Assembly: GCF_016433145.1 (NCBI RefSeq)
Contig: NC_058135.1
Location: 275,136,214-275,200,213, forward strand
Reading direction: 5' to 3'
DNA length: 64,000 bases
Source of the DNA: Gracilinanus agilis
Lineage: Eukaryota
The translations under genes were made by a program, and so were the position numbers. This document shows positions 8,702 through 57,740 of this stretch, one piece after another (the first letter of the stretch is position 1; every line of letters starts with the position of its first letter). Below the pieces are notes generated by a model. The model was not told the origin of the DNA. It did no database searches and saw only the letters and a program-made list of their open reading frames with translations.

Positions 8702-8893
8702 TTTATTTTAGTTTTTTAAACCCTTAACTTCTGTGTATTGGTTCCTTGGTAGAAGAGTGGTAAGGGTGGTCAATGGGGGTCAAGTGACTTGCCCAGGATC
8801 ACACAGCTGGGAAGTGTCTGAGACCGGATTTGAACCTAGGACCTCCCGTCTCTAGGCCTGACTCTCAATCCACTGAGCTACCCAGCTGCCCCC
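8702..8893 (-). mobile_element. SINE1_Mdo-type tRNA-derived SINE
   Basis: Reverse complement of GGGGCAGCTGGGTAGCTCAGTGGATTGAGAG...GGGTTTAAAA, flanked by the TSD ACAGTAAATGCTTTT. Confidence 0.9.
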
Positions 8894-11091: not shown

Positions 11092-11270
11092 GGGGGCAGC
11101 TGGGTAGCTCAGTGGATTGAGAGCCAGGCCTAGAGACGGGAGGTCCTAGGACCAAATCAGGCCTCAGACACTTCCCAGCTGTGTGACCCTGGACAAGTCA
11201 CTTGACCCCCATTGCCTATCCTTACCACTCTTCCACCTATGAGTCAATGCACAGAAGTTAAGGGTTTAAA
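11092..11270 (+). mobile_element. SINE1_Mdo-type SINE
   Basis: GGGGCAGCTGGGTAGCTCAGTGGATTGAGAGCCAGGCCTAGAGACGGGAGG..., TSD AAAAATAATGGAG. Confidence 0.9.
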
Positions 11271-14289: not shown

Positions 14290-15234
14290 ATGCTGAACAC
14301 TGACTACAATAAGAGTTCTGTGACCACATTTATGCTCTTAGGATTCACAGATTATCCAGAACTCCAGGTACCACTTTTCCTGGTCTTCTTGGCCATGTAT
14401 GTCATCACAACCGTGGGAAACCTGGGCATGATCTTAATCATCAGAATTAACCCCAAATTTCATACCCCTATGTACTACTTCCTCAGTCATTTATCCTTTG
14501 TTGATTTTTGTTACTCCTCCATTGTCACACCCAAGTTGTTGGAGAATTTAGTTATGGATGATAAAAGTATTTTTTACTCCAGTTGCATGCTACAATATTT
14601 CTTGTCTTGTACTGCAGTGGTGACCGAGTCCTTCCTACTGGCTGTGATGGCCTATGACCGCTTTGTAGCAATTTGTAATCCTCTGCTCTACACAGTCATC
14701 ATGTCTCAGAGGCTTTGTGGCTTCCTGGTGGCTGCATCCTATCTCTGGGGCATGTTTGGGCCCTTTGTACTCCTTTGTTTTGCCCTACAATTAACCTTCA
14801 CTGGCTTTAATATCATCAACCATTTTTTCTGTGAATATACCGCTCTTATTTCCGTCTCCTCCTCTGATATCCATATCCCACATTTACTGCTTTTTGGTTT
14901 TGCAACATTCAATGAGGTGAGTACCCTCATCATCATTCTTGCCTCTTATGCTTTCATTTTTGTCACTGTCCTTAAGATGAATTCAGCGAGTGGAAGACGT
15001 AAAGCGTTTTCCACTTGTGCCTCTCACCTGACAGCCATCACCATCTTCCATGGGACCATCCTTTCCCTGTACTGTGTGCCCAATTCCAAGAACTCAAGGC
15101 ATACAGTCAAAGTTGCATCTGTCTTTTATACAGTGGTGAACCCCATGTTGAACCCCCTTATTTACAGCTTGAGGAACAAAGACGTGAAGGAGGCCTTCAG
15201 GAAACTGATATTCAGAAATACCTTTTCCCACTGA
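14290..15234 (+). CDS. OR5D14: olfactory receptor OR5D14-like (314 aa); the true start is ATG 14290, not the TTG at 14260
   Basis: [72 protein letters not shown] and TVVNPMLNP match recalled OR5D14. Kozak gccATG; NKS glycosylation site. Confidence 0.95.
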
Positions 15235-19462: not shown

Positions 19463-19672
19463 AGAGGCAGCTGAGTGGCTCAGTAGCTCAGTGGACTGAG
19501 AGCCAGGCCTAGACCCAGGGGATCCTGGTTCAAATCTGGCCTCAGTTACTTCCTAGCTGTGTGACCCTGAGGGAGTCATTTGACCCCCATTGCCTAGCCC
19601 TTACCACTATTCTGTCTTGGAACTGATACACAGAACTGATTCTAAGATAGAAGGTAAGGGTTTAAAAAAAAA
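19463..19672 (+). mobile_element. SINE1_Mdo-type SINE
   Basis: Head GAGGCAGCTGAG...CAGTGGACTGAGAGCCAGGCCTAG, tail GAAGGTAAGGGTTTAAAAAAA, short TSD AAGATGA. Absent from the paralogous region at 34500. Confidence 0.85.
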
Positions 19673-23271: not shown

Positions 23272-24719
23272 TACTAGAGCATTGGTCTGAGCCTAATAAA
23301 AACAAAAAAAATCAACCTGCATTTATAAATTGCCTACTAGTTAAAAATGTAGCATACTAGTAAACATGGAGAGAGGGATAAAATGGCACAGATAGAAACA
23401 ACAACAAAAGAAATAAACAAACAATTGCTTCTTTCAAGCATTTTACATTTTATTGGGGAATAGAAAATGTGCATGTTTTTAAAGAACATATAGTAAATAA
23501 ATAAATGCAAGCTGCTTTAAGCATAAGGAATGAGTATCTGAGATTCACAAGAAAGATCTCATGTATGAGATAGACTTGCATCTCTGTTTTGAAGAAAACT
23601 ATTCTAAGAGGCAGAGGTGAGTAGGAAACATGTTGTAGTCATGCACAATATTAAAATTAAAACCTTTGTTCTCAAATATGAAGGGAAAGAAAGTTTGTAA
23701 AAATGGTACTCCCTCTCTGACCAATTTCCTAAATTCACAAGAAGGGGAGATGTCCCTTTAGATAACTGGATAGTCACCATTCAATCTTATACCAGTCTTC
23801 TACCTTGGTGGAAAGTAAGAAATACCATTTTTAAACCAGAGCTATTTCATATTCTTGAGGAATTCTACCATGAACTGAAACCTCTATGTCTGTTGATAAC
23901 CTACATGAATTCATTCTTCAAGGATTAACAAACTCCCACTTGGTCATTTATTCCTCATCCCATTGGTCCTTCAACCTTCACTGTGAGCTTCCTATTTTCA
24001 TCTTCTTCCTCTGAATAGCTTCAGTATCACACTCTAATTACACTCATTCCTTCCAGTGTGCTTTCTGGAATGTATTTTTTCATAAGAAATAATTTTATTT
24101 CATTTTAATTGTGTTTTTAACACACCATTACTTTATCTCCTCCTTTGAAGCTTACTTAAACCATATCTATCATCCAGTTGAAATTCTGGTAACAGTTGTC
24201 ATCATTGGTGTTGTTGCACAGTAGGAAAAAAAAGAAACAATGGTTAAAAACTGAAAAGAGGTAATATAAAGTTGGGAGATAGGTGTCATGTTAAAATTTA
24301 GAGCAATCCCAAAGTAAAGTGGAATGCAATGGGAAGAAGTAGATTCTCCCTCACTGGATGTTACTAAGAAAAAGATAACTGACACTTCTTAGATGTGTCA
24401 AAAATAGTCTTTTGAACTAGAGTTTGGATGTAATGTTCTTTGATTGCATTTCACAGTGAAAATATTTCAGTCTTTTATTTGGATTTTATTATCCAGTTAA
24501 TAGTAGAATAGAGACCCCAATCAACATTTATAAGTCTTCCCATGGTCTTCAAAATATCTAGATTTCCATTAGGCTCTCTAATCCTTTAAAATGGAAGATT
24601 TAACATTTTTTCTTTTCTTTTTACTTCATATCATTAATGTGTACCATAGTACTATGTTTAATATTAATTTTAAAAATTGTTTTCCGGGCTGACTTTGTGT
24701 TTCTTTTTTCCAGAATGAC

Positions 24720-25691
24720 ATGGTGACCAGTGAGGGAAATCACACTTCTGTTGCTACATTTGTCCTCTTAGGTTTCACAGATTACCCAGACCTTCAGTTG
24801 CCTCTCTTCCTGATATTCTTGATCATATATTTTATAACTGTGGTGGGAAATCTGGGAATGATTGGCATCATTCGAATCAACCCCAAACTTCACACCCCTA
24901 TGTACTTTTTCCTCAGCCACTTGTCCTTTGTGGATTTCTGTTATTCCTCCATCATTGCTCCCAAGATGTTGGTGGATTTACTCATAGAAGACAGAAGCAT
25001 CTCCTTCTCTGGCTGTTTGGTTCAATTTTCATTCTTTTGTACCTTTGTGGTGACTGAGGCTTTCCTGCTAGCAGTAATGGCTTATGATCGCTTTGTGGCT
25101 ATTTGCAATCCTTTGTTGTACACAGTTGTCATGTCCCAGAAGCTTTGTACCCTGTTGGTGGCAGGATCCTACTCATGGGGTATGGTCTGTTCCCTCCTAC
25201 TCACATGTTATGCTGTCCAATTATCATTTTATGGATCTAACACAATTAATCACTTTTTCTGTGAATTCTCATCTCTGCTGACTCTCTCTTGTTCTGATAC
25301 ACATTTCAATCAGATGCTGCTTTTCATCTCTGCCACCTTTAATGGTTTGAGTACACTTTTGATTATCCTGGCCTCTTATGTATTCATTTTTGTCACTGTC
25401 CTGAAGATGAATTCATCTAGTGGAAGACGTAAAGCCTTCTCTACATGTGCCTCTCATCTGATGGCCATCACTATCTTCCATGGGACTATTCTTGTCCTTT
25501 ATTGTGTGCCCAACTCCAAAAACTCTCAGCTTATGTTCAAAGTAGCTTCTGTGTTTTATACAGTGGTAATCCCCATGCTAAATCCCCTAATCTACAGCCT
25601 TAGGAACAAAGAGGTAAAAGAAACTGTCCTCAAGTTAATGGATATTAACATCAAGTTAAGGGACATTCTCCATGTGCACATTAACAGTTAA
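24720..25691 (+). CDS. OR5D18-like: olfactory receptor OR5D18/OR5D16-like, paralog a (323 aa)
   Basis: NHT site; [63 protein letters not shown] and [12 protein letters not shown]. Acceptor TTCCAG at 24713. Confidence 0.93.
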
Positions 25692-26088
25692 TTAGAAATT
25701 TTACCTTGTGGAACTATTTTAAGCATTTCTTGTAAAAAATTGTACAAAGTTCTATAAGAATGTCCCATCTTTGTTTAAGGATTTTTATAATTATGAAAAA
25801 AAATCTATCTGTTTATGTATATACATATGCATGTATGTATGCATGTATTTATCTATGACTTCATCATTCCTTCAACACAGGCAAGATTTTAGATGCATTA
25901 GAAGTAAAAATCTCCTGAATAATTTAGATTTCTTTATAGTCTGATAAAAATAGCCAGATTTTAGAATTTGACCCAATTTTTAAAATTGGTATAACCTTAA
26001 AGAAAAAAAAAGTCAAATTTTATCTGTAAAACTTTGATTCCTCCAGTACACTTAGAACTTAAAATACTTTCATCATTCTATTCTGTGG

Positions 26089-26666
26089 TGTGACGGTTAA
26101 ATTTTGGGGGTAGGAGTTTGAACAAAAGTCAGGAGAGCAGCTTCTTAAACACAAAACAATTAGTTTATTATTAGGAAAATACAGATAGGAAATAGAAAGG
26201 AGGATATCAAGAGGAATCTTATAATAGCATATAACTATACATAATATCCCAATCCTAATGAAATTTTTTCTAGAAAAACCTAAATCTATTTGCCTTTGAG
26301 GGCAGTGCCTTCTGCCAGAGCCAGGTTCTGGCCTAACTTTTCTACTCTGACTAATAATTTACTCATTATCTATCTACCTATCTACCCAAGATAATCAATC
26401 GTCAATAAAGCTGTTAAGGCTTTAAATCCATTTCTCTGACTCAAACAATCCCATAGAGAACAAGTGACACATACTCCTCTCCCCAGGGGATCCAGACACC
26501 AAAGCCCCTTTCCAACTGCCAGCTGCAACTATCACTCACTTTCAGGGACTGAAAGTGAGTGTCAATTGTACAACAGGGGGTTTCTTACTCAGAAATCTTT
26601 TTGCTCCCTTGCCTCTTTAATAGAAAAAGGGAGAAACTATGAAAAACTCTCTTTAACAGTTGCACA
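26089..26666. mobile_element. probable solo LTR
   Basis: Starts TGTGACGG and ends TTGCACA, with internal TTTATT and AATAAA signals. TSD not clear. Confidence 0.4.
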
Positions 26667-28299
26667 TGACAAACTTAAAAAAAAGTCTTTCTTCATAGTG
26701 ATACTGAAAAAATTAAAGAATAGTCAGAATGGTTATAATAACAAATCTTTAATTTGGGCAAGGGAGATAAAAATTTAAAAAAAAACTTAGTATAGAGCTA
26801 CTGTAATGGGAGGACTATAATCTTGGGAAAGACACACAGTGATGTAATACTCGAAATTCCTGCTCATCTACAAAAAGTGGTGAGTTTATATAGTTTTTGG
26901 GACAAAATCGGGGGAGGGCAACAGACTGCATGAGGGGTTACAGAAGATTAGGAAATCAAGGTAGTTAGAGACTAGAGTGAGTGGGAACAGCCTAGATGAA
27001 ATACCCATGTGCTAGGGTGGCTATAAAGGTATTTAGGTTGGATTGTCTTTAACTAATCCTGGATAAAGTAATTGGAAAAGTACTTAAGAATTCATTTTCT
27101 TTAAACTCAGTCCTTGGGACAAAGGCATTTCATAGTTCATTTTATCTTTTTTTTGTCTTCTCTTATCCTGGTCATTAAGAGCCTCCAAACTTAAAATATG
27201 TTCTCTTCACGGTAGAGAAATGAGTAATGACTCTTCTAATTGCCCTGGCAAGTTTTTGCTTGATTTTTTTTAAGGATTAACTATACCTTTTTGAGGCAAT
27301 AATCTACCCATTCGTGATATTTGTGCATCTGTGGTGCTTTTACTGAATTTCTTTTTCATTTGATTGCAACAGATCTTACCCCAATGTGGTCTTGAATAAT
27401 CCTGCAAACATTTGACTTCCCCAGATTTAAAGCTGTTAAAATATCTTAAACAGTTATATAAGTGTCTTTTTAGGAGTTAAAATATGTATATATTTCCTTT
27501 AGCAAAATCCATTTATATAACTTTATATAGCATATATAAAAATCCATTTATATAAAAAAAAGAAATGAAATAAATATTTATGACACAATATGACATAATA
27601 GCATTCAGATAGAGGACAAGAAAGTAAAGATGGATAAACTATGCTAATAAGATTTCTTCTGTTCAAGATCAGATATTTTGAGTGAGCCTAATGTTAATTG
27701 AATTAAACACTGATGTCCATTACTGTCAGAAAATGAAATGAACTTAAAATTATTATTTATCTCTTATACTTCATACATCTCTATATTATAGAATCTTAAA
27801 ATATAATATAGCTTTGCACTAGTTATCTCGTTTTAAAATAGAGATAAAAACACATCATCTCTATGTCAAAGTATGTTGCTGAGAAACATATTTTGTAGAG
27901 TGAGAAGTATCACATAAATGTGAACTATAATTGTTCAGCCAGTCTTGAAATTAGGTATAGTATCCTAAACAAAATCAACAGTTTGATGATTGCTAGAAGA
28001 TAGAGAAAGGTTCTAGGTGATTTCTATCTAATTGAAACAATTAAGTTTGACCCAGGTGGACAAGAACATGAATTTAAATAACAAATCTCTGTCACCAAGT
28101 CTAAAAGATAAAAAAAAATTTAATGATCTGTCACATTACATGTATATAATAGAATTGGTATCAATTGGGGGTGGGGGGAGAGGAGAAGGATCAGGAGGGC
28201 ATAAAAATTTGATCCACATGCCCAGAAAGTGTACACATTTGTTTTGATTACCATATTGCAATCCACAGAGATTTAATAATTTCAGGAGTATAATTTATA

Positions 28300-28606
28300 G
28301 ACAATTCCCAAGAGGAAAAATGAATTATGAAATCCCTTGTAATGCACATATGGAAAGGTTTCTGAGAAATTCAGACATCTCTCTCTATCTTTCAGAAGGG
28401 TGAAGCAGTTTAAACCTGTTCTGCTGGTAAAACTAGAGTGCATGTAATTTTTGAAATTAAAATTAATTAAAAAAACCTATTACAGAAAAAGGAATAATTT
28501 AATTAAGCCCTTCTTGCTGGCATTTTATCCCCCTCTTTTGTTACAGAATCTATCTGTGAAAATTTGATTTACACTCTAATGAAAAGAAAATGAACATTAG
28601 GTAATT
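28300..28606 (+). promoter_or_regulatory. orphan OR5L-type promoter and 5'UTR exons (no OR5L coding exon follows)
   Basis: O/E-like TTCCCAAGAGG (28305-15), AATGAATTA (28319-27), donor CTG|GTAAAA (28427), acceptor TTGTTACAG (28546), donor CATTAG|GTAATT (28601). Collinear with 46750-47085, upstream of the OR5L-like gene. Confidence 0.6.
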
Positions 28607-28627
28607 GTACTATTATTCAAGCATCTT

Positions 28628-28860
28628 GGTGTCTCACAGGATAGAATGCCAGGCCTGGAGTCAAGAAGACACATCTTCATGAGTTTAAATCTGGCCTCAG
28701 AATCTTATAAGCTTTGTGACCATGGATGATTCACTTTACCCTGTGATATCCTTAGATAGATAAGTATCCTTATCAATAAAATAAAGATGATACACCTTAT
28801 AGATAAGTACGCTTATCTATAAAATAAACAGGGGAAAGAAATGCCAAACCACTCCATACA
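28628..28860 (+). mobile_element. MAR1-type SINE with an internal duplication/hairpin
   Basis: GATAGAATGCCAGGCCTGGAGTCAAGAAGAC head and GAAAGAAATGCCAAACCACTCC tail. Confidence 0.65.
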
Positions 28861-29632
28861 TTGCTATTGGAAAAAAAATAGTTTTGATTATACAAAGCTT
28901 TGTTACCTAGATGTTTTCTTTGCTTTTTAGTATGCTATCCAGATTGGTCACAGCTTTTCTTACAAGAAGCATCTTTTCATTTTATAGATGCAGTTCTTGT
29001 CTTCGGTGGTCTTTGAGCCCAAGAATACAAAATCTGACATGGCTTCTATTTCTTCTCCCTGTTTTCAAGGAAGTGATGGGTCCAGTTGCCAAGATTTTAG
29101 TTTTTGTGGTTAAGCTTCAATTCAGACTTTATGCTTTCCATTTTCCCTTTCATCAAGAGAATCTTAATATATATATATATATGCATATATATGTGTTATT
29201 TTATGCATATGAATTTGTTCTTGCTTTCTCAGGCAACCTTAATTCCAACTTCTGATTCATCCACTCTGACATTTCACATAAAGTAGGCAGTATGTAAGTT
29301 AAATAAAGAAGGTGATGCTATAAAGCCTTCTTGTGCTCCTTTTCCAATTTTAAACCTATCAGTTCTATGTTTCATTCTAAATATTACTTCTTGGTCTGCA
29401 TATAGTTTGCTCAGGTAAAATAATCTAGTCTTTCCATCACCCTGAGGACTTGCTACCTTTCATTGTGGTCCACTTGGTTAAAGGCTTTGTCAATGAAGAG
29501 ATAAATGAGTTTTTTTTTAATTTGTTTTCTGGAACTGTCTTGCTTTCTTCCTAATCCCATGAAGATTGGCAATTTGTCTTTTCCTTTGTCTTTTCATAAA
29601 CCAGGCTGCTCTTCAAGTAATTCCCACTTTCT

Positions 29633-30134
29633 TGTTCCATTTTCAGTTTAGCCAGGCAAGAGGAAAGTCACTCAAGAGTAAGTAAGGAAGGAGATTTATT
29701 ACACATGTGGACCCAGACGGGATCGTTCCTCAGGTCTGAGCATTGGAGAGAAGGGTTCTTGTTATTTTATAAACTTAGGTTACATGACTGGACACACATG
29801 ATTGGACACAAAGATACGGGGAATTATATGATTGGATGAAGAAGGGGAGTGGCCCTGCATTCCGTTGCAGCATTGTTCTTGGGGTAGCCCAGGCTTGTAT
29901 AGTCCTTAGTATGATAAAGACAGTATAAGTCCAGAACATCAATCCATCATGGTTATGTTAGATCACAGCATGGGAAGTAACAGTGTCCTATGAAGGAGAA
30001 CCACTTGCTTTGTTCTGGAATTTCAGCAGGTCATTGTGTTTGTGGCAAGCTGGTGGCTCTGTCAGCCTTGCAAAGCCAGTCCTTAGAGCATAAGGGAGAC
30101 CTTAAAGATGGGGATCTGAGGATTATCTACTACA
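29633..30134 (-). mobile_element. solo ERV LTR nested in the RTE
   Basis: TG...CA ends; AATAAA (TTTATT near 29695) and TATA (TTTTATAA near 29766) on the minus strand. It splits otherwise collinear RTE sequence. Confidence 0.65.
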
Positions 30135-31029
30135 ACTTCACATATTATTTAATATAGCTAGTGTAATCTTGAGTGTAACCTTCCTGGCATGTGAAGGGAG
30201 AATACTTGTTTGAAAATTTGAATATTCTTTCATATTTCCCTTTTTAGAAATTAGGACATAAACTGATTGTTTCTCATCTGGTGGCCATTGCTGAGTTTCC
30301 CAGCTTTCCTGGAATTTTGAGTGCTTCACTTTGAAAGCATTGTCTTTTAGGATTTCAAGTATCTCTGCTGGAATTTTGTTGCATCCTCTGGCTTTATCAT
30401 TAACAATGCTTCTTAATAACCACTTAACTTTACTCTGGCTCTAATTGAGTAACCACACCATCATTGTTTGGTGATGTTAAGAACTTTTTTGTATAGTTCT
30501 TTTGTATGTTCTTGACACATATTTTAATCTCTTCTAGTGCTTTTAAATTCTTACCATTTTTATTTTTAGTGCCTATTTTTTTCATTAAGTATTCCCTTGA
30601 TATCTCTAATTTTCTTAAAGACCTCTTTGGTCTTTCCCATTTTATTTTTTTCTAATTCTTTGCATTGCTAATTTAAGGAAACTATCATATCTCTCTTTGC
30701 TCTTTTCTAGAATCCTGGGTTCCATTGGTATATCCTTCCCTTTCTCATTTCCCTTTCGTTTTCCTTCTTTCCTCAGTTATTTATAAAGCCTCATCAGACA
30801 ACCAGTTTGATTTTTTTCTATTCTTTTTCCTTGGAATGTTTTCTGTTGCTGTTTCTTCTATGAAGAAACTTCACTCTGTCTCGTAGTTAGTTCCCTAAAT
30901 CTATTCATCACTCCCACTTCATATCCATAAAAGAGTTATTTAGGATATTTTTAAACAGTCTAATGCTTTCCCCTACTTTCTTTGATTTAAGACTGAAATT
31001 TGCAGTCATAGCTCCACATCTCATTTTAT

Positions 31030-31217
31030 TTTTGTTTGTTTGTTTTTAAACCCTTACCTTCTGTTTTGGAATCAATATTCTGGAGTGGTAAGGACTAGGC
31101 AATGGGGGTAAAGTGGCTTGCCCAGGGTCACACAGCTAGGAAGTGCCTGAGGCCAGATATGAACCCAGGACCTCCTGTGTTTGGGGCTGGTTCTCCACTG
31201 AGCACCCTAGCTGCCTC
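31030..31217 (-). mobile_element. SINE1_Mdo-type SINE nested in the RTE
   Basis: TTTTTAAACCCTTACCTTCTG...GTCACACAGCTAGGAAGTG...CTAGCTGCCTC. Confidence 0.85.
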
Positions 31218-32599
31218 ACAAGTCTTGTTTTAAATGAATAATTTTAAATGATAGAGTTGCCTTTTGGGTTGTTAACAAGAATATTTTCTATGACCAGAGT
31301 GTAATTTTGTCAGTATTTTATTGTATTTACTGTCCTGCTTCATTTTGTGCTCCAAGACTGAACCTGAACTTGCCTTTTATTACAATTATGATTTTTATTT
31401 CCTACTTTAGTATTACAAATCCCTATGATGATTTTGCATCTTTTTAATGTTATTTCTAGATGTTGTAAATATTTTCAGAACTGATCAACTTTGTCCTCTT
31501 CAGTATCAGGCTAGAGTACAGACTTCTATTAATATGATGTTGAATACTTTCCATTGGATTTGAACAGATATCATTCTGTAATTTTTGAAATTACACTCTA
31601 GTACTTCAATTCTCAATGATTTATTAACTATGATGATATTTCATTTCTTAAAATGGATATTTTCTCACAGCAGTATACGTAATGATCTCCTGAATTAAAT
31701 TCATACAATCCATGTATTTAAGTTCACTAACACCTAAGATGTCAATGTTTAATCTTTCATCCCATTTGTGACCACACCCACTTTACCTTGACTTATTGAT
31801 CTTTATTGGTCATATATTCCAAGTTCTTAGGTAGTTTTGAGCTTTACAGTATTGGAGTTTCCTTTCATCATCAACCATAATATCCACAAGTAAGATTCCT
31901 TTTGGTTTTGGTCCAGTCTTTTCATTAATATTAGAACTACATATAGTTGTTCTCACCAAAATGTCACTGGACATTTTCCTTTTCCTTTTCTTTCTTTTTT
32001 GACAAGGACTTCAAAAGACATTTTGTTCAATATCTTTATTTTAGAAATAAAGGACCTGAGTCTCAGAGACAACATATTGATTGATTGATTGGCATAAGGT
32101 TTTAGATATGGTAGGAACTTTCCACCTTCTTTCATTTTACAGAAGGAAAACTGAGTCTCAGAGTAGAATATAATATCACATTGAGTGATTAATTGGTTGA
32201 TATATAGGTCTTAGAAATGACTGGGACTTATGAGCCCACCCCTTCCATTGAAGAAATGGAAACTCAGGGAAAATTTACATCACATATTGACTTTTTTATT
32301 CATTTATGTGTGGCTATAGATGTAGTGGGAACCCCTAAGTCCATCTCTTTTATTATATTGTTCAGACAAGGCAGCCCCAGTCTGGGCTCAACAATCTCTC
32401 AAACCAGTGGTCTAGGATGTAGATGAAACTCAAGAAGTCAGTACTCTCAATGTGCCATGTTATCATGGAGGAAGATCACTTTTCTGAACCAGTGCATGAC
32501 ATTTACTTACATCTCACCACCCAGCCATCTCTTTGAGGCCCACACTGGGTGGTCTCTAGGACTTAATGAGACCCAAGGCCTTTAGGCAGACCAAATCCT

Positions 32600-33420
32600 T
32601 TTCTGAGGATCAGGCAGGTGGGCAGAAGCCTTATGCTTGTGTCATGGAGGTCAAATGTCTGGGCCAGACCTAGAGGGGGCAGAGAAGAGGGCAGAAGGAA
32701 ATGGAAGTCATCTAGAATTTTGGTACCGGTCCTAGTCTGGGTCCAGTTGTTGTCTACTGGCTCCGGGGCTTACTGAAACAGTGTCAATAGCAGTTTTAAC
32801 TCCACTTTCTGACCTGAGGATCTCATTTTGTTTCATATCTTTTATTTTTTTAAATATTTTCTCTATTATTTTTGGCAAAGATATTATAGCAGTTTGCCAT
32901 TTACTTTTCCAGTAAGTCACCTTTTGACAGAACTCTCCACTATAGTCTGTTGTTTTGAGTAAATATTCTGACCTCCAGATCTAGGTCTGAAAACAGTAAC
33001 ATGAAAAACCTGAAGCTAGGGAAAATTCCCCCTCCACCTCAGAAGTAGAGCCTAATTTTAACTAATGTTAACAGTCAAGAAACAGGCTAGAGAAATGAGG
33101 AAACAAATAGAACCAGATGACATAAAATTATTATGGTGACTGGAAAGATAAAAACAAACTCAGAAGACAACATTGTCAAAACATCTACTTGCAAAGAATC
33201 AAAGAAAAATGTGAAATGGTCTTGGGCCATAAAAGAATTCTTGGATGAACTGAAAAAGGATATGAAAAATCAAATGAGAGGCATAGAGCAAAAATTGGGG
33301 AAAGAAGTGAGAGACTTGCAAATAAATGAATAATTATTCAAAAGTTTGGTAAAGAATACACACAAAAATACTAAAAAACAAAAACAACAATAAAAAAATT
33401 GGCCAAATGGGAAAAAAGGT
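32600..33420 (+). mobile_element. old L1 5'UTR/ORF1 fragment
   Basis: ORF 33133-33333 (KKNVKWSWAIKEFLDELKKDMKNQMRGIEQKLGKEVRDLQ) is typical of a marsupial L1 ORF1 coiled-coil start. Confidence 0.7.
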
Positions 33421-33639
33421 TGTTGTTTTTTAGATATATATGTGTGTATAAAAGTTTATGGCCTTATATATAGATTAGATGAATTAGACATCAAACAGCT
33501 CGCTAGATAAAACTTTCCATGATGTTTTCAATGTAATTGAACTTGATATGGCTTCTAAGCTAGTTAAAATCCAATTTAACAGATCCCAGAATTGTTCCAA
33601 GGGTATAATCCAAATATATTGAAATTATTGTTAGAAAAA

Positions 33640-34330
33640 AATCAAAACCTAATTTTTAGTTTTATTGCATGCATAAGAAACACAACTAAAAAAAAAGAAA
33701 CACAACTACTAGGTCTGTATACCAAAGAGATTTTTTTCCAAAGGAAAAGGACCTATATATTCAAAAATATTTATAGGAGCTTTTTTTATGATGGCAAATA
33801 ATTAGGAATTGAGAAGATCCCATTCAATCAAGGAATGACTGAAAAAGTTGTGGTATATGGTTGTGATGAAATATTTTGTTTGCATGAGAAATTATGATCC
33901 TCATGTTTTGAGGGCGAAAAAAGCAATCTGAAAAGATTTACATGAACTGGTATTAAGTGAAGTGAGCAGAATCTGGAGAACACTGTAAACAATAACAGCA
34001 ATACTGTGTAATGATCAACTACGAATGACTTATTAAAGAAATATAAGCTAAGACAGTTCTGAAAGATTTATGATGAAAATTCTATGCACTTTCAGAGAAA
34101 GAACTGATGTAGTCTCTGTAAAAACTGACATTTATTTTTTCTTATTTTGTCTGTTTCTTTCTTTTATTATATGATTAATCTGGAAATATGTTTTGCATGA
34201 TTGCACATGTATAGTCTATATCAAACTGATTGGCTTCTCAGTAAAGAGTAACAAGAGGTAGTGAAAAAAATTGAGTTTAAATTAAAAAGAGAATTTAAAA
34301 TTATTTTTGTAGGCAAGTGGAAAAAAGATA
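33640..34330 (+). mobile_element. old L1 3' fragment (ORF2 end and 3'UTR)
   Basis: CTACTAGGTCTGTATACCAAAGAG...GAAAAAGTTGTGGTATATG...GATTTACATGAACTG are L1 3' hallmarks, and the fragment ends in an A-rich tail. Confidence 0.75.
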
Positions 34331-34538
34331 CTAAATTTTAAAGAAAAATGGCCAGATGAGATAATGGAAGCATTTGAGCTTTAATCAGTTTAAATAGCTA
34401 TAATTAGTAAAGAATTATTCATTTTAATATATAAATTAAGCATGGAAAGATTAACCTTTTCCTTCTTTTTCCTACTACATCAGTTTCCCTCTTGATTTTT
34501 CCTTGATCAAGATAGCATCAAATATAGTTTAATCTTTT

Positions 34539-34696
34539 TAATTACTTATCTTTGGCCCATGGAGAATAATGAAGTTGAGGGTGGATTCTCTAGAGCCTTG
34601 TCCCTGAAGGATACTGAGACATTAAATCCTCAGTATCATGTCCATATGCAGCTTTCATAGGCAGGAGAGTAGCTTGTCTCCATTCAGAAGGTAAGT
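34539..34696 (+). promoter_or_regulatory. candidate promoter and non-coding exon 1 of the OR at 38274
   Basis: TAATTA (34539), TAATGA (34567-72), degenerate O/E TCCCTGAAGG (34601-10), perfect donor CAGAAG|GTAAGT (GT 34691). Paralogous to 19700-19858. Confidence 0.65.
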
Positions 34697-37600
34697 CTGC
34701 TTATGATGGAGTGTTTTGGGGCTTGCATGAAAAAGGCTAGCTTCTCTGTAGCTTACACATATTTACATGGAGGCAATAAAATGCCCAAATTGTAACACAG
34801 CCTGAGAGGTTTTTCTAGAAGCAAGATTAAAAGAGACAATATGTAATAAAAAGAACTACTAGCTCTATACATTTTCCTTTAGGTGATTTTCTTTATCTAT
34901 AAAAGGAAAGCATAGAACTTTATGATCTCTAAATTTTATTTCACCTCCAGATCCCACTATTTTCTATAACTATCTGGTACTATAGAAGTCACAAATTAAA
35001 ATTATGCCTGATCTGTGTTTCTGGTAGACCTTTAATCTGAGGAACAACTAGTATGTTGAACCTATAGGGGCTGGCATGCTGTCCCTATTTCCCAGTCTTC
35101 CAAAGGGCCAAATATTGGAAACTCATGTTTAGTAGCAACAAACACTGGATTTGGAGTTAGAATTTAGAAGAGCTAGCTTAACCAATTCTTGTACTGTGTG
35201 ACATACTAAGGCTCATTTTCCTTAAACTATAAAATGATTGGGTTGAAGTATGTGTTCTATAAAGACTCTTTCAGCCTTGTACCATTTAATCTAATAAATC
35301 AATTATATCTGAAGGTACTCTAATACACATTTGCATATCCATTTCGGAGTCTTCCTTAAATCCAACAGATACTCCTTTCTGAAACTTCTACCCATTTCCC
35401 CAGTCCAATGACTCAGCAATTAACTCCCTCCTAGCTCTGACTTACATGAAAGTCATCATGGTGAAACTCCATAAAGTAGTTTAAAGAGAAGAATTAGTTC
35501 TAAAATTGAATAGTTTCAAACATCTTCACTATATTCATTGTGATGAAGATCTTTTGCAATCTTCTCTTAATCAGATGCCTCTATGTAGTGGTCTGCTTAT
35601 AAATGTGTTATTACCTCTCCAAAAAATAAAATACATTCAACGAAATTTTATTTGTAATCTGTATTATTAACATTTTCTCCATCATTTAAACCTAATCAAT
35701 AAAAACCAAATTAAAACGATAAATCAATCCCTGATGTATCGCATTTACCAATTTCAGAGATGAAATGCTCACACTAAAACATTTGAGCTGACTCCAATTC
35801 ACCCTTGTCCCTGTCAGAGAAAGCTAGTATGCTCAGTACTCTCATGCTGCTTTTCTTCCCTGGTAATGGTGCTAATTTTAGGTGGTAATAACAAAAGCCT
35901 GAATTGCAAACTTTAGCAAAGTTGAAAGGTAAAAACATAAGATTTAATAATTAGGTAACTAAATAATTAAACGTTAGAAATATTAAATTTAATAACCAGA
36001 GTAAAGTAGAAAAAAATATATATAAGAAAAAAATAGACTGAGAGAAGATTCACATTTTCATTGAAAGGATGGGGGGATTTAGGCAAAAGTATACTATAAT
36101 TGGAAGCTCAATGAAGGTAGACAGAAAATAGTATAATTCCTCTAAGGTGAAGAAGAAATAAGTTCAAATCCAGGCACTGATAGTTATTAGTTGTATGACT
36201 CTTGGCAAGTCACTTGACTTTTATATGTTTATCTTTATTTGTAAAATAGGTGGAATAATAATAATACCTATCTCCAGGTTTTGTCATAATGATAAAATTA
36301 GATGTTTATGAAGTGTTTAACAAAAATGTGTTATATAAATGTTAGTTATTATTATTAATAGTAGTAATCAATTTCATTACTAATTTCATAAATGATTGAA
36401 TGGAATTATCCAAAAATGAATGGTTCCTAATGAACTTGGAAAGAATCATCTAGTGGAGTACTTTAGGTATCTGCACTTTATTTTATTTTTTGCAAAAATG
36501 TATGAATAATCTGCTTATAAACCCAGCATGACAGAAATCATGGAGGCATGTGTATCATGCTGAATGAGAATAAAGATTAAAAAAAATCTTTGGATATGAT
36601 AGAGTGTTAAGCTAATCTAATGAAAAAATTAATCAACATGTATTTATAAATTGCTTACTTAACAGAAAGCACTATTCTAATCATGGGGGGGGGAATACAA
36701 TGTCACATATATAAGAATAAAAAAGTACCTTCTCTTATGGATCTTATATTTTATTGAGGAAGAGAAAAAAGTACATATTTTTAAGACTACAAAGTAAATA
36801 AATATAAGATTCTTTAAGCAAATGGAATGAATATCTGAGTGTATTTGGGTGAAAATCATGTAGATTTCCCTGGATCTCTGTTTTGAGAAACTGTCATATA
36901 CTTAAAGAGATCTGTCTCTCTTTTAAGAGGCAAAAGTGTGTGCTCTAGTTATGTACAATATTAAATATAAGGCCTTCGTCCTTAAATAAGGTAGGAAAAT
37001 AGTTCATAAAATTTTAATCAATCTCTCATCTGTTTCCTAACTTCAGAGGAAACATAAATTCCTTCAAAATAATTGAACACTGTTCTTTTTTATACCTCAC
37101 TCCTACATTGGGGGAAATTGAGAAATACCATCCTCAGGCATGAACTATCTTATACCTGGAGGGACTCTGAATCCAAACCTCTGGGTATGTTGATAACTCT
37201 TTGAATTCATTCTTTAGGTATTAAAAGATTCACAAATGATCTTTCTTTCCCCATCTCAATAATTCTCTATTCTTTACTATTAATTTCCTATCTTCATCCT
37301 TCCTCTCTGAACTACTCAATATTCCATTCAAAAGAGAACCAGTTCTTCTGGAATATTCTCTGAAATGTCTTTTTCATAGGAAACAATTTCATTTCATCTT
37401 AAAAGTTTTCCTTGAATACTCCACCACTTTGTTATCCCTCCTCTTTAGAAATTTATTCAAACCATATAGGCCATACAATAAAAATGTCTATTAGTTGTTT
37501 TCATCACTGATGTTGTTCTGCATAATACCACAGGAAAAAAGCAACAATGGTTAGGAATTATAAAGAGGTAATACAAAGTTGAGGGTGGGTGGCATGCTAT

Positions 37601-37806
37601 CATTTAGAACTGACCAAAAGTGAAATGGAATGTCTTGGTAGGGATTAGATTCTCCCTCAATCAACATTACAAAGAAAAAGATTGCTGATCACTTCTCAGA
37701 TATGTCAAGCAGGAGTCTTTTTCATGTATATGTTGGATGCAATGGCCCTTGATTGCACTTCCCGATTAAATTATTTGAATTTTTACCTGGATTTTATTCT
37801 CTAGTT

Positions 37807-38014
37807 CAGTGATGAGCAAACTATAGCCTCTGGGCCAGATGCAGCCCCCAGAAATGTTCTATCTGGCCACGTGACATTATTACTAATCTTATGAATACAA
37901 TGATACAATATGATACAATAAAATGAAACTTCGAAAGAGTTGCCTTAGAAACAGACTGATAGATGAGCATTTCCTTTCCTTTGGCCCCCTCTTTAAAAAG
38001 TTTGCCCATCAATT
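37807..38014 (+). mobile_element. hAT MITE family A, copy 2
   Basis: CAGTGATGAGCAAA...TTTGCCCATCAATT; TSD CTCTAGTT/CTCTAGTC. Absent from the paralogous site near 24495. Confidence 0.9.
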
Positions 38015-38273
38015 CTCTAGTCATTAGAAGAATAGTGACTTCAAAGAACATCAAAAGTACTTTCTCAGATTTTTCAATCTATATAAATTCCCATTAGGCT
38101 CCCTATTATTTGAAAGCAGAGAAAAAATTAGGTGGGATTTTGCTTCATATGTTATAGTTTTATTACCTAGTAGAGTTCTATGCAAATAATAGGCATTCAA
38201 TATTTGTTTTTTTAATATTATTTTTAACCTGTTTTCAAGACTGATTTTCTGATTCTTTCCCTCAGCATGAATC

Positions 38274-39218
38274 ATGGTGACCAGTGAGAGAAATCACAGT
38301 TCTATTGCTACATTTGTGCTCTTAGGTTTCACAGATTACCCAGACCTTCAGGTGCCCCTGTTCCTAGTATTCCTGATCATATATTCAATAACTGTGGTGG
38401 GAAATCTAGGAATGATTGGCATCATTCGAATCAATCCCAAACTTCACACTCCTATGTACTTTTTCCTCAGCCACTTGTCCTTTGTGGATTTCTGTTACTC
38501 CTCCATCATTGCTCCCAAGATGTTGGTAGATTTACTCATAGAAGACAGAAGCATCTCCTTCTCTGGGTGTTTGGTACAATTCTTTTTCTTTTGTACTTTT
38601 GTGGTGACCGAATCTTTCTTATTGGCAGTGATGGCCTATGATCGCTTTGTGGCCATTTGCAATCCTTTGTTGTACACAGTTGCCATGTCCCAGAAGCTTT
38701 GTGCCCTGTTGGTGGCAGGGTCCTATACATGGGGTATGGTCTGTTCCCTCCTACTCACATGTTCTGCTGTCCAATTATCATTTTATGGATCTAACACAAT
38801 TAATCACTTTTTCTGTGAATTCTCATCTCTGCTGACTCTCTCTTATTCTGATACACATTTCAACCAGATGCTGCTTTTCATCTCTGCCACTTTTAATGAA
38901 GTGAGCACACTTTTGATTATCCTGGCCTCTTATGTATTCATTTTTGTTACTGTCCTGAAGATGAATTCATCTAGTGGGAGACGTAAAGCCTTCTCTACAT
39001 GTGCCTCTCACCTGATGGCCATCACTATCTTTCATGGGACCATTCTCTTCCTCTATTGTGTTCCCAACTCCAAGAACTCAAGGCATACAGTGAAAGTAGC
39101 CTCTGTGTTTTATACAGTGGTAATCCCTATGCTAAATCCTCTAATCTATAGCCTGAGGAACAAAGATGTAAAAGAAACAGCCATGAAGTTAATGGACATT
39201 AAAATTTCTTCTCCATGA
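38274..39218 (+). CDS. OR5D18-like: olfactory receptor OR5D18-like, paralog b (314 aa); closest in this window to recalled mouse mOR-EG
   Basis: [78 protein letters not shown]. Acceptor CCCTCAG at 38265. Confidence 0.94.
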
Positions 39219-39329: not shown

Positions 39330-40900
39330 ACAATGAAATTAGAGAAATATGAGGGGCTAGGCATTAACTGATCAGATTTTTATTAAAGAAAGCTCATGAC
39401 AAAAGAATGGATGAAGAGGATTTTTTAAAAAGATGAAATACAAATTTTTATTAAAGTTAAACAGTTTTATACAAAAATTTTCAATAAAGGTAATTTTAAA
39501 AGGAAATAGTAATTCGGGGAAGTTTTAGAACACACTTCACTGATTGGATTCTCATTTCTTAGATATATGAAAGTAATTCAAATTTACAAAAAAAATATAA
39601 GCTATTCTCTATATTTAAAAGGATAAAGGGTATAAACACTATTCTAAAGAGGAAAAACAATTTATCTATATATTTATGAAAAATGTTTCTAATAACTATG
39701 AATTAGAGATAGGTAAAATAAAATGTATCTTACTAAGAACTTTGAGATTGTTGAAGATAACAAAATCGATAAATATTAAAGGAATTAAGAGAAAGTACAC
39801 ATAGTAATATACTATTGTTGGTCCTGGAATGTGTACAAATATTGAGAAAAGTAACATGGGATTATATAAGAAAACATGAAAAATAGTTTACTTTAACTGC
39901 AGTATTTATCTGCAAGGTGTATACTTAAAAGGACAAAGAAACAGAAATTTCTATATGTACTAAAATAATTTTAACCTTTTTGACATAGCAAAAATGAGGA
40001 AGCAAAAAGGGTACCCATCAAATAAAAAATTCATAGTATAGATTCTGATCTGAAAATTAAATGGAGGGGGCAGCTGGGTAGCTCAGTGGATTGAGAGCCA
40101 GGCCTAGAGACGGGAGGTCCTAGGTTCAAATCTGGCCTCAGACACTTCCCAGCTGTGTGACCCTGGGCAAGTCACTTGACCCCCATTGCCTACCCTTACC
40201 ACTCTTCTACCTTGGAGCCAATACACAGTATTGACTCCAAGATGGAAGGTAAGGGTTATAAAAAAAAAAAAAAAAAAAAAAATTAAATGGAATACTATTG
40301 AGCTAAAGGAAATAAGAAAATAGATTATTTCAGAGATGTGGACAATCTAATATGAGCTAACACAAACTGTAGCATAACTAGAATCAATATTATGAACACG
40401 AAAAATTTTGAAGATTTTTATAAAATAAATTAAACTAAAATAATCAGAACTGGAAGAACCATTTATAAAATAGCACTGTTGAATATTTTGAATGTTGTAA
40501 GAATTATGATAAATAAAATTACCATCAGTGTTTTCAATGGATCAAAGTTGAAACCTGCTATCAATTCCTGATGGAGTGATGATGGATTTAGCCTGCAGAA
40601 GGATAAGCATTTTTTTCATACAATCATTGACATAATTTCTTATACTTGACTATGAATGTTTGTTGGATTTTTTCTTTTACCTTTTTTGTTCAGTGACATA
40701 TAGGATGGGAAGTAGAGAAAATAGTTTTCAGTTAATTAAAAAAAATAAAAATGGATTCTTTACAAGGATACCACAAATGTGGAATATGGCATATACTTTC
40801 AGTTAAGGTTTAATATTTTTTATTGACAGCTCATAAATTAGGCATAATCTAGAAATGTTTATAATGTAAAAACATGTAAATATTTTTTGATGGTAGAGAA
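39330..40900 (+). mobile_element. old degraded L1 ORF2 3'/UTR fragment (contains a young SINE)
   Basis: A-rich, L1-like sequence (TTAAAGTTAAACAGTTTTATACAAAA, AAGGGTACCCATCA, GAATACTATTGAGCT). Confidence 0.55.
40066..40282 (+). mobile_element. young SINE1_Mdo-type SINE
   Basis: Near-consensus full-length element with a poly(A) of about 23 nt and TSD AAAATTAAATGGA. Confidence 0.95.
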
Positions 40901-45260: not shown

Positions 45261-45908
45261 ACAAAAATCTCTGGAACAGTTTAGATGTTCTCAGTCTGAT
45301 GAATATGCCCATATCTTGGAGGCTGACAAGGCTGCCTTAATTGCTATAGTCTTGAATTAAAAAAATAAATAAATAAAAGTTTCATTTGCAAGATTTTCCT
45401 TTTTCCCTCAAACATCAACAGCTATTTAAATATCTTGAATTATCATTTAATTGTTAACAGATATGATCATTTAAATGTTAACAGATAAAATGTTTGTATC
45501 ATTATATTTCCTTGGAGTAATATCCATTAAAATGCAAATAATATAATACATATGAAATAAATATATATGACCTAATATTTAGCATTTAACTAGTGGATAA
45601 GAAATTAAAGATGGAGAAACCAGGCTAATTATGATTTTATCTGCTCAATATTAGATATTTTGAATCAATTTACTGTCAACTTAATTCCACCCTCAATTGA
45701 TATAAAAATGAAACTAAATTAAAATTATGATTTATCTACTGTAATTAACAAACCTCCATATATATCATAATCTTAAAATATAACAGCTCTCTACCTCAAT
45801 TATAAGATAACTGGGTATAAATAGACTTGCATTTTTATGTCAAAGAGTGATGGTGTAAAACGTTTTCAAAGTTAGAAGTAGTATATAAATGTGTACTTTA
45901 ATTACTAA

Positions 45909-46398
45909 TGTAGATTTCAACTCACATAAAGGAACTGTAAAAGGGAATTCTCTATCTCTTTCTCTAATTTAACTGGGGCCTTGGGGTCCTTTTACCATAG
46001 AGATGTGTAAAGATATATCATCCCACAGTGAAAGGAAGTAGAAACCAGAGGAACAGGAAGAGAGGTAAGAGGGGGTTATAAAAGGCCAGCATGGGGACTC
46101 TTTGGACCTTTTTTTTGGGTTAGGAGTTGGTTGTTGGGAGGTGGTTGGTCATTGGTAGTTGGTTGTTGTGTGTTGGTTGCTAGTGGTGTGGGTTGTTGAT
46201 TAGTTGCTAGTTGGTTGCTTGTGAGCTGAGCTGAAGGGTGATCAGCTGGACTTTCTTCTATAGGCAGTTATAGGTAGTTATAGGATAGCTAGTTAGTTAT
46301 TAGGCAATTTATTTCTCTACCTCTTTCCTGTATTTCCCTCCTTTTTACCATATATTCATTAAAATTAAATTTTAAAAAGCTGTTCTCTTATTTTGTCA
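45909..46398 (+). mobile_element. solo LTR in sense orientation upstream of the OR5L-like promoter
   Basis: Starts TGTAG; TATAAAA at 46077-83, ATTAAA at 46358-63, GT-rich tract. Absent from the paralogous block near 27935. Confidence 0.65.
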
Positions 46399-46749
46399 AA
46401 GTCCAATTTAAACACTATAGAACCTTAAGGAAATGAGAAGTTTGAAGATTGCTAGGAGAGAGAAAAATTTTCTAGGCCATTTCCATCTTATTGAAACAAA
46501 ATATCCATGTTTAACCCTGGTGGACAAGAACATGAATTGCAATAACAAGTCTCTGTCATCAAATCTAAGAAGTGAAAAAAGCCAAGTGCTCAACTATAAC
46601 ATATATTTGTCATAGAATTCATACAAGCTATTTTTGTTGGGAGAAGGGTATAAACATTTTGTTTCAGATACCCAGAAAGTGTATACATTTGTTTTGATTG
46701 CCAATTTGCAACCCACGAAGGAACATAACTTCAGGAGGATACTTGGGGG

Positions 46750-47085
46750 ACTCAATTCACAGAGGAAACAAATGAATTATAAAATCCCTTGCCTTTCAAA
46801 CACAGAGAAATTTTCTGTGTGAGAGATTCAGATATCTCTTTCTCAACCCTATATATTGGCTAAACAGTGTCAGCCTATTTTGGTAAGTAAAACTTAAAGG
46901 ATATGTGATTGTGTTTTTTAATTAAAACTAATTTTAAAATACCTTACAGAAGGAGAAATGTTATAATTGTGCTCTCATTCTAGAATTCTTCTTGATAATG
47001 TTTTCCCTACCTCTTTTGTTAGAGAATTCATATGTGAAGATTTATTTTATGCTGTAATAAATGGAAAATGAACATTAGGTAATAG
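46750..47085 (+). promoter_or_regulatory. candidate promoter and two non-coding exons of the OR5L-like gene
   Basis: TTCACAGAGG/AATGAATTA/ATCCCTTG cluster (46756-91), donor TG|GTAAGT (46883), acceptor TTTGTTAG (47022), donor CATTAG|GTAATA (47079). Confidence 0.6.
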
Positions 47086-49037
47086 TGATTATATTATTAA
47101 AATAATATAAAAATAATCCTATTATCAAAGAATAACCTTCAAAGACATATAATGCTTTAAGGTTTGTAATTTTTTCATATGTGTTTACTCATAACCCCTC
47201 TTTTCTCAGTCTTAAGGCAAGAAGATATGATTAGAGGCAACAGTCAAGATCTATAGCTTGAGAAGCTACCAGAGAAAAGGCCCATTCACAATTGAAGTAT
47301 ATTCAAGATAAGTGTACGCCTGGATATGTGTCCAATGATGTATCCAGATTTTCCTCTAAGTTCTCTCTTTGTGCCCAGCAAGGTGTAAAGACATGACTTT
47401 TAGAATTGTGCATGCACAAACAGACTCAGGATTTGACTCTTTCTTCTCATCCTTCTGATAATGCCATGTACTTTTGGTTAGCCCTTCCCTTGGAAATATC
47501 ACCAAAACTGTCCTTAATTAACCAACAAGAGACTGACTTCTTTCCTACAGGTTAGCACATTGGACTGATTTTTTTTCATAGTATAGACATAGAATATTTT
47601 TTCCCCAGAATGGTTACTAACTACTTATGTAAACTACAAAAATATTTACTTCTATCTTCTGGACCTCATTTTTTCAAATTTAAATAAGTGAATTAGATAA
47701 TTAACTGCTAATATTCCTGCCCGTCTAAATCTACAATTCCATGATTCTTTTTGAATCAGGGAAGTGGTGAATCATAGTTTCATGGTTTCTATTTCCCTAC
47801 CTTGTTTTCCTCTCAAACTGTATTCATATGCAGGTCAAAGGAAGATTCATTATTTCTAGTAAAAGAGATTCTCCCATTTTCCAAAATGGTGCAAGGTTAT
47901 AAATATAATATGCCCCCCTAAAGAAGTCATTGTCAGTCATTACTTACTGATTTTCAAACTTCCAAGACAAAAAAAGGAATATACTGAGCAATAACCTTAA
48001 GGATACTTAACCTCCAAAGGAAATGACATTCTAATACACTACATTGGGTACAGTATAGACACACATATAGCTGGCATTTACATAGAGCTTTAAGGATTAA
48101 AGAACTCATTTCCTATTTCTTATATTTTAATGCCACAATAACCCTATAAAATAGATGTGGTTAGCATTAATATCTCCATTTTGTACCAGATGGATCTTGG
48201 GTTCAGAAAACTTAAATGACTTAAGAATAATCAATTAAATGAAAAATACTGGAATTAGGATTACAACACAGGTTTTTCCTGAAGAGATTAGACTAGCTGG
48301 ACTCTAAGGACTCTTCCAATTCTCAATCTTTGCACCTATGCTCCTATTATTCCAAATCTTGTATTCCTTGATAGCCTCATGTGCCTTTATGTAAGTAAAA
48401 AATGTATGATATATATGTATATAAATACTATATGTATATATGTGTGTGTGTCTGTGTGTATAATGTGTGTGTCTTCCTATATGTATAGATATGTGTGTAT
48501 AAAACTTTAGGTTGTATGTAGGATAGATGAAATAGGCATAGTATAATAAAATTTTACATGATGTGTTTGACAAAGGAAGTTGAACTTGAAGTGGCCACTA
48601 AACTAGATGAAATCCCATCTATCTGATCCTAGAATTGTTCCAAAGGTAAAATCCAAAGTTTTTTGATTGATTGAAATTTTTGATGGAAAAATTAAAAAAT
48701 ATATATATATATACTTGTATATTTAGCTTTATTGCATGCATAAGGAATATTTCATAAGTAAATTGAACAGTGATTTTTAGAAATGGTAACATTTATAAGT
48801 GTGGGATGTGTGCGTGTAGGTATGTGTGGGGAAGAAAGTGAAAGATACAAAGATACAAAGGCAGAGACAGAGACAGAAACAAAGATAAAGATATATGTAT
48901 ATATAGAAAGAGAGACAAAGAGAAAGTTCTAGAGAGACAAAGAAAGTTGAATTTCTTAGCTTCTTTGGAATTGACACAATCCATATAGCTAGGTTATACA
49001 TGTGATCTGATCTTTCAACAAGGAGTATACTATATGT

Positions 49038-57554: not shown

Positions 57555-57740
57555 GGGGTAGCTGGGTAGCTCAGTGGATTGAGAGTCAGGCCTAGAAATG
57601 GGAGGTCCTAGGTTCAAATCTGGCCTCAGACACTTCCCAGCTGTGTGAGCCTGGGCAAGTCACTTGACCCACATTGCCCACCCTTAACATTCTTCTACTT
57701 AGGAGCCAATACACAGAAGTTAAGGATTTAAAAATGTAAA
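57555..57740 (+). mobile_element. SINE1_Mdo-type SINE
   Basis: GGGGTAGCTGGGTAGCTCAGTGGATTGAGAG...; TSD AAAAATATCAATAAAA. Confidence 0.9.

Follow-up and report, generated by a model that had tools for sequence, protein, structure and literature searches.

A known situation close to the one described here, a tandem pair of olfactory receptor (OR) genes, A and B, lying in a 64,000-nucleotide (nt) stretch of the genome of the didelphid marsupial Gracilinanus agilis (NC_058135.1, positions 275,136,214 to 275,200,213 of the forward strand; this whole stretch is referred to below as the window), is that of the red opsin and green opsin genes OPN1LW and OPN1MW of humans and Old World monkeys. In these genes exon 5 shows a divergence peak at the residues that determine specificity despite conversion, which has been read as a sign of selection (Fawcett and Innan 2011, PMC3924837); Teshima and Innan 2008, in the form in which they are cited in PMC3924837, ascribe the opsin peak to selection against conversion. 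Like A and B, the opsins are tandem paralogues homogenised by conversion, with a sharp divergence peak around a few residues. The opsins combine homogenised neutral introns with a diverged exon, which makes a direct case for selection, whereas around A and B the flanks are unhomogenised, conversion is confined to the exon, and no neutral homogenised sequence brackets the peaks. Moreover, the function of the opsin sites is established, while that of the A and B sites is a positional inference.

A second parallel is the two-locus model of conversion with selection for RHCE/RHD (Innan 2003, to the extent that it is presented in PMC3924837), which was fitted to population data. It predicts high divergence around a selected difference, linked silent sites included, and low divergence elsewhere in the converted duplicates, a pattern like that of A and B; the comparison differs in that A and B are represented by a single genome's sequence. 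Among OR clusters, the primate paralogues at 17p13 are known to convert (Sharon et al. 1999, as summarised in the review of Kambere and Lane 2007, PMC1995454), and conversion confined to OR coding regions, yielding mosaics or wholesale homogenisation with diverging flanks, has already been described (PMC1995454). A and B differ from these earlier cluster cases in that the pair predates the marsupial radiation, and in that its diverged patches coincide with orthologue-diagnostic residues. That radiation is, by rough dating, of the order of 80 million years old. Another case of OR gene conversion is reportedly the mouse pair MOR28/MOR10, said to have been treated by Nagawa et al. in 2002.

The two genes considered here are the following:

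Gene A, 24720 to 25691, plus strand: an intact open reading frame (ORF) for a class II olfactory receptor, OR5D18-like, of the A-type, 323 amino acids (aa), with a long C-terminal tail.
Gene B, 38274 to 39218, plus strand: an intact ORF for a class II olfactory receptor of the B-type, 314 aa, resembling placental OR5D18.

Interlocus gene conversion between A and B, limited to the coding exon and following an old duplication, is well supported by the sequence comparison. The conversion has left three patches in which A and B are strongly diverged and which represent old locus-specific sequence; these unconverted patches carry the locus-diagnostic residues. That the islands are maintained by selection is judged somewhat better than an even chance.

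Both translations carry the OR motifs MAYDR[YF], KAFSTCxSH, and PMLNPxIYSLRN, and both have the size and architecture of an intact single-exon receptor with seven transmembrane helices (7TM) of ~310-325 aa. Positions 24876-24976, within A, encode the highly conserved motif region of the second transmembrane helix (TM2). The A protein is identical to the annotated NCBI protein P0135 and the B protein to P0141. Compared with the solved class II OR structures (consOR5, consOR1, consOR2, and consOR4), A aligns without gaps, the top match being consOR5 9wpm (E=4e-126). Of the best matches that are not fusions, nearly all bear the name OR5D18 or OR5D18-like and contain PF13853 (Pfam 7tm_4). The best matches of A are Monodelphis proteins of 92-93% identity, while B shows 82-85% identity with placental OR5D18 and 91% with wallaby B (P0013). 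Placental OR5D18 has TESF, NEVS, and RHTV in common with B; A is unlike it in being a sister copy found in marsupials only, which has a longer C-terminal tail, G209, and Q-L-x-F at 270-273.

The age of the duplication can be read from the surrounding non-coding DNA, for which the following segments are relevant:

Upstream flank of A, 23293 to 24498, plus strand: homologous to 36612-37806 (BLASTN, 67.7% identity over 1248 columns, E=1e-99).
Upstream flank of B, 36612 to 37806, plus strand: the partner of 23293-24498.
Downstream flank of A, 27565 to 28608, plus strand: ~69% identical to 45552-47086, downstream of B.
Homogenised zone in A, 24650 to 25610, plus strand: from about -70 to codon ~297 as delimited by sliding identity, with its B partner at about 38204-39164.

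In a MAFFT global alignment the upstream flanks differ at 340/1136 sites (p=0.30), corresponding to a Kimura two-parameter distance (K80) of 0.39. Sliding identity between A and B is about 0.59-0.75 upstream and 0.84-0.98 inside the homogenised zone; it rises to 91-98% at about -70 and drops below 60% past codon ~300. The earlier reading of the DNA, made from the sequence only, had put the flanks at roughly 70% identity by eye, and this estimate is borne out, the flanks being 68-70% identical as against 91-98% in the coding exon. Its further proposal of an old duplication agrees both with the flank K80 of 0.39 and with the presence of A- and B-type orthologues in didelphids and australidelphians alike. 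The homology of the downstream flanks shows that the old duplication unit reached beyond the genes. About 200 bp upstream of B (about 37810-38020) have no counterpart upstream of A and form a gap in the alignment.

Against this background the exon is a mosaic. The coding sequences (CDSs) of A and B align without gaps, and the six block counts of the sequence-only reading were reproduced exactly: 2/114 nt differ in codons 60-97, 15/72 in codons 98-121, 3/159 in codons 153-205, 5/18 in codons 206-211, 3/123 in codons 212-252, and 16/72 in codons 253-276. For the same six blocks the Nei-Gojobori proportion of silent differences (pS) is 0.09, 0.77, 0.03, 0.71, 0.10, and 0.58, respectively, the values for the whole CDS being 0.28 for silent (dS) and 0.039 for replacement divergence (dN). 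The differences in codons 98-121, 12 of 15 of which had been called silent, are indeed mostly so, with 12.5 silent and 2.5 replacement by the Nei-Gojobori count. At third positions three tiers can be distinguished: the coldest blocks, with 6/132 differences (0.045), an intermediate tier, with 15/111 (0.135), and the hot blocks, with 24/54 (0.44). The intermediate tier comprises codons 1-59, 122-152, and 277-297 and differs from both the coldest (Fisher p=0.02) and the hot one (p=3e-5), so that the description of the pair as homogenised everywhere except in three segments is too tidy. The tiered divergence indicates several conversion events of different ages, in at least two age tiers. The GC content at third positions, checked for biased conversion, is 0.43-0.51 in every tier and gives no clear signal. 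One locus-specific difference, C191Y, common to the window species and Monodelphis, stands isolated in the middle of the coldest block. ORs usually keep a cysteine at this position of the second extracellular loop (ECL2). Codon 191 of B (38844-38846) encodes Tyr in the window species, Monodelphis, and Petaurus, and the diprotodont A copies have Ser.

The heterogeneity does not depend on the choice of block boundaries. Permutation of third-position differences gives p=0.006 for their dispersion, p=0.01 for the longest identical run, and p=0.02 for the densest 24-codon window, and a maximal-segment scan with no preset boundaries returns codons 98-121, codons 253-304, and a minor segment at codons 28-31 (permutation p=0.002-0.004 for the top three segments). 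In a Sawyer-type test on the 545 sites that vary across the window's six paralogues, the longest fragment concordant between A and B covers codons 164-190 (p=0.02). The patch in the fifth transmembrane helix (TM5) stands out within codons 153-252 (300 nt, 11 differences; permutation p=0.011) and is too small to be detected on silent sites alone. A lack of significant dS heterogeneity had been named beforehand as one finding that would refute the conversion proposal; the heterogeneity is significant under permutation, with p between 0.002 and 0.02.

That the homogenisation results from conversion is indicated by the contrast between silent sites in the exon and the duplicated flanks. In the coldest blocks, third positions (6/132) fall far below the flank value of p=0.30 (binomial p=1.6e-13), and so do four-fold degenerate sites, 3/60 as compared with 340/1136 flank sites (binomial p=1.5e-6). 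When A and B are compared with paralogues C and D, 0.4-0.55 of the third positions in the same cold-block codons differ, and these codons are therefore not intrinsically constrained. The paralogue used as outgroup lies in the window itself:

Paralogue C, 14290 to 15234, plus strand: in-window outgroup, 70% identical to A at the aa level.

Since silent divergence in the coldest blocks is far below that of the flanks, there is good support for a gene conversion that was confined to the coding exon and homogenised it well after an old duplication. The conversion of the scaffold put forward earlier is thus upheld on two counts, the silent divergence far below that of the flanks and a mosaic structure that is significant under permutation (p=0.002-0.02).

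The three islands that were left are listed below, with codons of A and with the helix numbering anchored at R124=3.50, Y220=5.58, H254=6.48, and P289=7.50 (in ORs, F6.47-Y6.48-G6.49); the offset is confirmed by OR5K1, in which L104=3.32 and L255=6.51:

Island 1 in A, 25011 to 25082, plus strand: codons 98-121 (3.24-3.47) in the third transmembrane helix (TM3), also recovered by the segment scan; B partner 38565-38636; holds S/F104 and A/S114.
Island 2 in A, 25335 to 25352, plus strand: codons 206-211 (5.44-5.49) in TM5; B partner 38889-38906; holds G209 in A and E209 in B.
Island 3 in A, 25476 to 25547, plus strand: codons 253-276, comprising the top of TM6, the third extracellular loop (ECL3), and the top of TM7; B partner 39030-39101.

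The blocks of the third island span 6.47-7.37, and beyond them the divergence stays high, in graded fashion, up to the 3' end, the scan segment being 253-304. The TM6/ECL3 block of the sequence-only reading is accordingly diverged as claimed, except that it is continuous with the diverged 3' end rather than bounded at codon 276. Replacement differences between A and B within the islands fall at residues 104 (3.30), 114 (3.40), 209 (5.47), 259 (6.53), and 270-273 (7.31-7.34, at the ECL3/TM7 rim, with residue 273 at 7.34), and also at 5.48. Position 5x47 is a pocket residue in OR1A1, the responses of which are abolished by its mutation, and 7.34 lines the site in a trace amine-associated receptor (TAAR). 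Position 3.40 is the PIF-equivalent connector and is variable among class II ORs, and 6.53, by helical geometry, should face away from the cavity. Hence the islands can be called odorant-pocket segments, as they originally were, with good fit for residue 209 (5.47) and only loosely for the other sites, the assignment being positional throughout; as a general label it is overstated.

The nucleotide comparison concerns one genome, and the comparisons across species were made with proteins: A-like and B-like marsupial proteins were obtained by cluster look-ups, aligned, and tabulated site by site. Orthologues of both types are present in Monodelphis, Trichosurus, Petaurus, Phascolarctos, and Vombatus. 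The A-type is characterised by Q/K-L/V-T/M-F at 270-273, by G209, by a tail 4-9 residues longer, the bilby protein being cut short there, and in most copies by A114; the bilby and the devil have A or V at 209 and share the states at 270-273; G209, Q270, L271, and F273 are also found in the A orthologues of Dromiciops, possum, glider, koala, and wombat. The B-type has E209-V210, R-H-T-V at 270-273, S114, and the short tail IKISS-, and placental OR5D18 has the same states. Residue 209 and codons 270, 271, and 273 are thus locus-diagnostic across all marsupials sampled, and residue 114 in most of them. The divergence peaks, silent sites included, are centred on residues conserved within each orthologue group. 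Two of the proteins encountered need separate mention. P0136 (Monodelphis, 363 aa) is an over-long gene model of the Monodelphis B copy with a differing C-terminus, and P0148 (Sarcophilus, 634 aa), flagged 'LOW QUALITY' and kept outside the alignment, may be a run-on or a fusion of the devil pair.

When the window species is compared with Monodelphis, 12 residues (6, 11, 32, 104, 114, 137, 191, 209, 259, 272, 273, and 298) follow the locus pattern and a single one, 155, the species pattern. The 12 locus-pattern residues in common indicate that the mosaic is real and old and not an artefact of assembly. Codon 155 (25182-25184 in A, 38736-38738 in B) encodes Met (ATG) in A, in B, and also in C, and Thr in both Monodelphis copies; M155 in A and B may be due either to conversion after the split or to a parallel CpG transition.

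In the full-length protein tree all the marsupial copies group together (support 97), with an A-type clade at 94, which fits a duplication in the marsupial stem lineage. The tree of the patches (54 residues) supports the A-type clade at 96, and a constraint that unites the four didelphid copies of A and B lowers the log-likelihood by 9.6 units (p=0.07 in the approximately unbiased test, p-AU). In the scaffold tree (248 residues) the didelphid A copies sit among those of B, and the copy closest to window A is window B. The expectation that pocket segments should group by locus is borne out by the patch tree; the scaffold may group by species, as was also expected, but the locus-wise alternative is not rejected (p-AU 0.60). 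In quartets, sites of the species pattern are more numerous than those of the control pattern for nearly all species pairs. No species-pattern site lies in codons 206-211 or 253-276, and one, site 101, is in TM3. Those that can be considered suggestive are T20 (didelphid pair), A101 (diprotodont pair), C22 (koala), F159 and V290 (wombat), and M155 (window).

The history of the locus that best fits these data is the following. A and B are OR5D18-type class II odorant receptor genes in tandem, the duplication being older than the divergence of the living marsupials. In didelphids the single coding exon of each, without the flanks, has been partly overwritten by the other through several interlocus conversions of various ages, and the stretches that escaped are codons 98-121 in TM3, the six-codon patch of TM5 at 209 (5.47), and the sequence from the top of TM6 through ECL3 and the top of TM7 to the 3' end. 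The islands would then persist through ordinary purifying selection on the diagnostic residues within each gene: a tract overwriting these residues would act as a deleterious multi-site mutation and be lost, while the linked silent differences would survive alongside. Selective purging of tracts that cross the patches, which the sequence-only reading had proposed, is plausible. The 18-nt island in TM5 is flanked on both sides by at least 100 nt of converted, nearly identical sequence, and conversion has been active directly beside the diagnostic residues. The conservation of these residues within either orthologue group throughout the marsupial tree makes it evident that their replacement is disfavoured. 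We infer that selection, rather than the chance placement of tracts, keeps the islands.

The explanation that competes best with this one accepts the conversion as real and sees in the islands a neutral patchwork, that is, spots at which a few tracts ended by chance, heteroduplex repair was patchy, or higher local divergence blocked branch migration. It is a possibility to be taken seriously and yet, on the whole, rather unlikely. In simulations with 2-8 random continuous tracts, a TM5-like 18-nt island appeared in only 0.5-7% of runs, and it held codon 209 in at most 0.2%; a random origin of an island at just this diagnostic codon is thus rarer still. Nor does a neutral patchwork account for the conservation of 209 and of 270/271/273 per orthologue group in genera of both major marsupial clades. 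Several observations, on the other hand, fit such a patchwork and weigh against maintenance by selection. Any remnant of unconverted sequence retains old silent and replacement differences together, so an argument from the diagnostic residues within the islands is in part circular. The TM3 island contains just two replacement differences as compared with ~12 silent ones, a very low dN/dS (2.5 replacement to 12.5 silent by the Nei-Gojobori count), and of its two replaced residues, S104 is confined to didelphids and A114 is not kept universally, three of the australidelphian A copies having lost it. The 3' island adjoins, and runs into, the limit of the convertible homology. The edges of the islands are sharp, look like the outcome of a few discrete events rather than of an equilibrium, and require only 3-5 such events. 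The nucleotide evidence comes from a single genome and a handful of conversion events, and the simulated tracts were continuous only. As regards the other marsupials, the low-powered scaffold tree does not reject the locus-wise topology when constrained to A-type monophyly (p-AU 0.60), and when species- and control-pattern sites are counted as distinct sites the ratio is 8 to 5, which is weak for conversion in other marsupial lineages. Maintenance by selection extends to a broader proposal, that the pair has been in partial concerted evolution since before the marsupial radiation, with selection protecting a minimal set of putative specificity residues (5.47, 7.31-7.34, perhaps 3.30 and 3.40) and with the same islands spared in independent marsupial lineages; this can be put forward only tentatively.

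It is much less credible that the divergent patches were imported into a recently homogenised pair from a third, more distant OR paralogue. Silent divergence in the hot blocks does match the level found between A and C or A and D (0.44 as against 0.46), B is the same as C at 8/9 of the differing sites in codons 267-273, and at four-fold sites the hot blocks exceed the flanks (13/20 as against 0.30, Fisher p=0.002). The hot blocks were, however, picked post hoc for this last comparison, and at third positions they do not differ significantly from the flanks. Within TM3, moreover, B differs from C at 18/72 and A from C at 23/72 nt, and in codons 253-276 B differs from C at 11/72; the A-type states are common to the marsupial A orthologues and the B-type states to placental OR5D18, so that they are ancestral at each locus. 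The in-window paralogues C, D, and E were considered as sources of the hot blocks and rejected, no block being near-identical to any of them.

A history without conversion, in which a mutation cold spot or synonymous constraint conserves the exon at silent sites too and the hot blocks are relaxed, is equally hard to credit. OR coding exons are under purifying selection, and the scaffold protein tree is compatible with the locus-wise topology (p-AU 0.60), yet such a history is contradicted by four-fold sites, which within one and the same exon differ at 3/60 in the coldest and 13/20 in the hot blocks, to be compared with 0.30 in the flanks, and by the 0.4-0.55 of third positions at which the same codons differ between A/B and C/D. 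Finally, the chimeric collapse of two close paralogues during assembly, invited by long identical runs of the kind seen here, is next to impossible to reconcile with the independently assembled Monodelphis A and B, which encode the same locus-specific residues (12 sites), with the existence of both proteins as annotated NCBI entries, and with the distinct flanks.

The surroundings of the pair are those of an OR cluster. Six intact OR ORFs are present in the window, all on the plus strand, and a tblastn search of the window with A returned the same six OR loci and no additional OR remnants; between A and B there is none. The segment 45552-47086, the partner of the downstream flank of A, lies 2.5-4 kb upstream of OR gene E (49641). 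The homology of 27565-28608 with 45552-47086, together with the lack of an OR remnant between A and B, fits an old two-gene unit from which the second coding exon was lost there. A protein search with codons 95-264 of B (170 aa) gave as its top match a placental protein, 82% identical, and no didelphid fragment proteins. In gene C, the mechanically defined ORF begins at the TTG at 14260, and the ATG at 14290 lines up with the other OR starts. It is also worth noting that a dispersed repeat of ~190 bp, probably a short interspersed nuclear element (SINE), occurs in the window in copies 74-86% identical to each other, at 19483-19672, 40078-40268, 11104-11233, 57558-57718, and, on the minus strand, at 8729-8881 and 31017-31215.

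A and B are a fresh instance of a textbook pattern, the divergence peak under gene conversion known from the opsins and RHCE/RHD, and the understanding of OR evolution or of gene conversion is unchanged by their case. Their value lies in the particulars. As a vertebrate example of conversion restricted to the exon of a single-exon gene, the pair is well dated, the duplicated flank serving as an internal clock. If it is selection that keeps the islands, residues 104, 114, 209-210, 259, and 270-273 are candidate specificity determinants set on a near-identical background, and the pair would then constitute a natural 'minimal swap' pinpointing the positions by which a class II odorant receptor discriminates between ligands.

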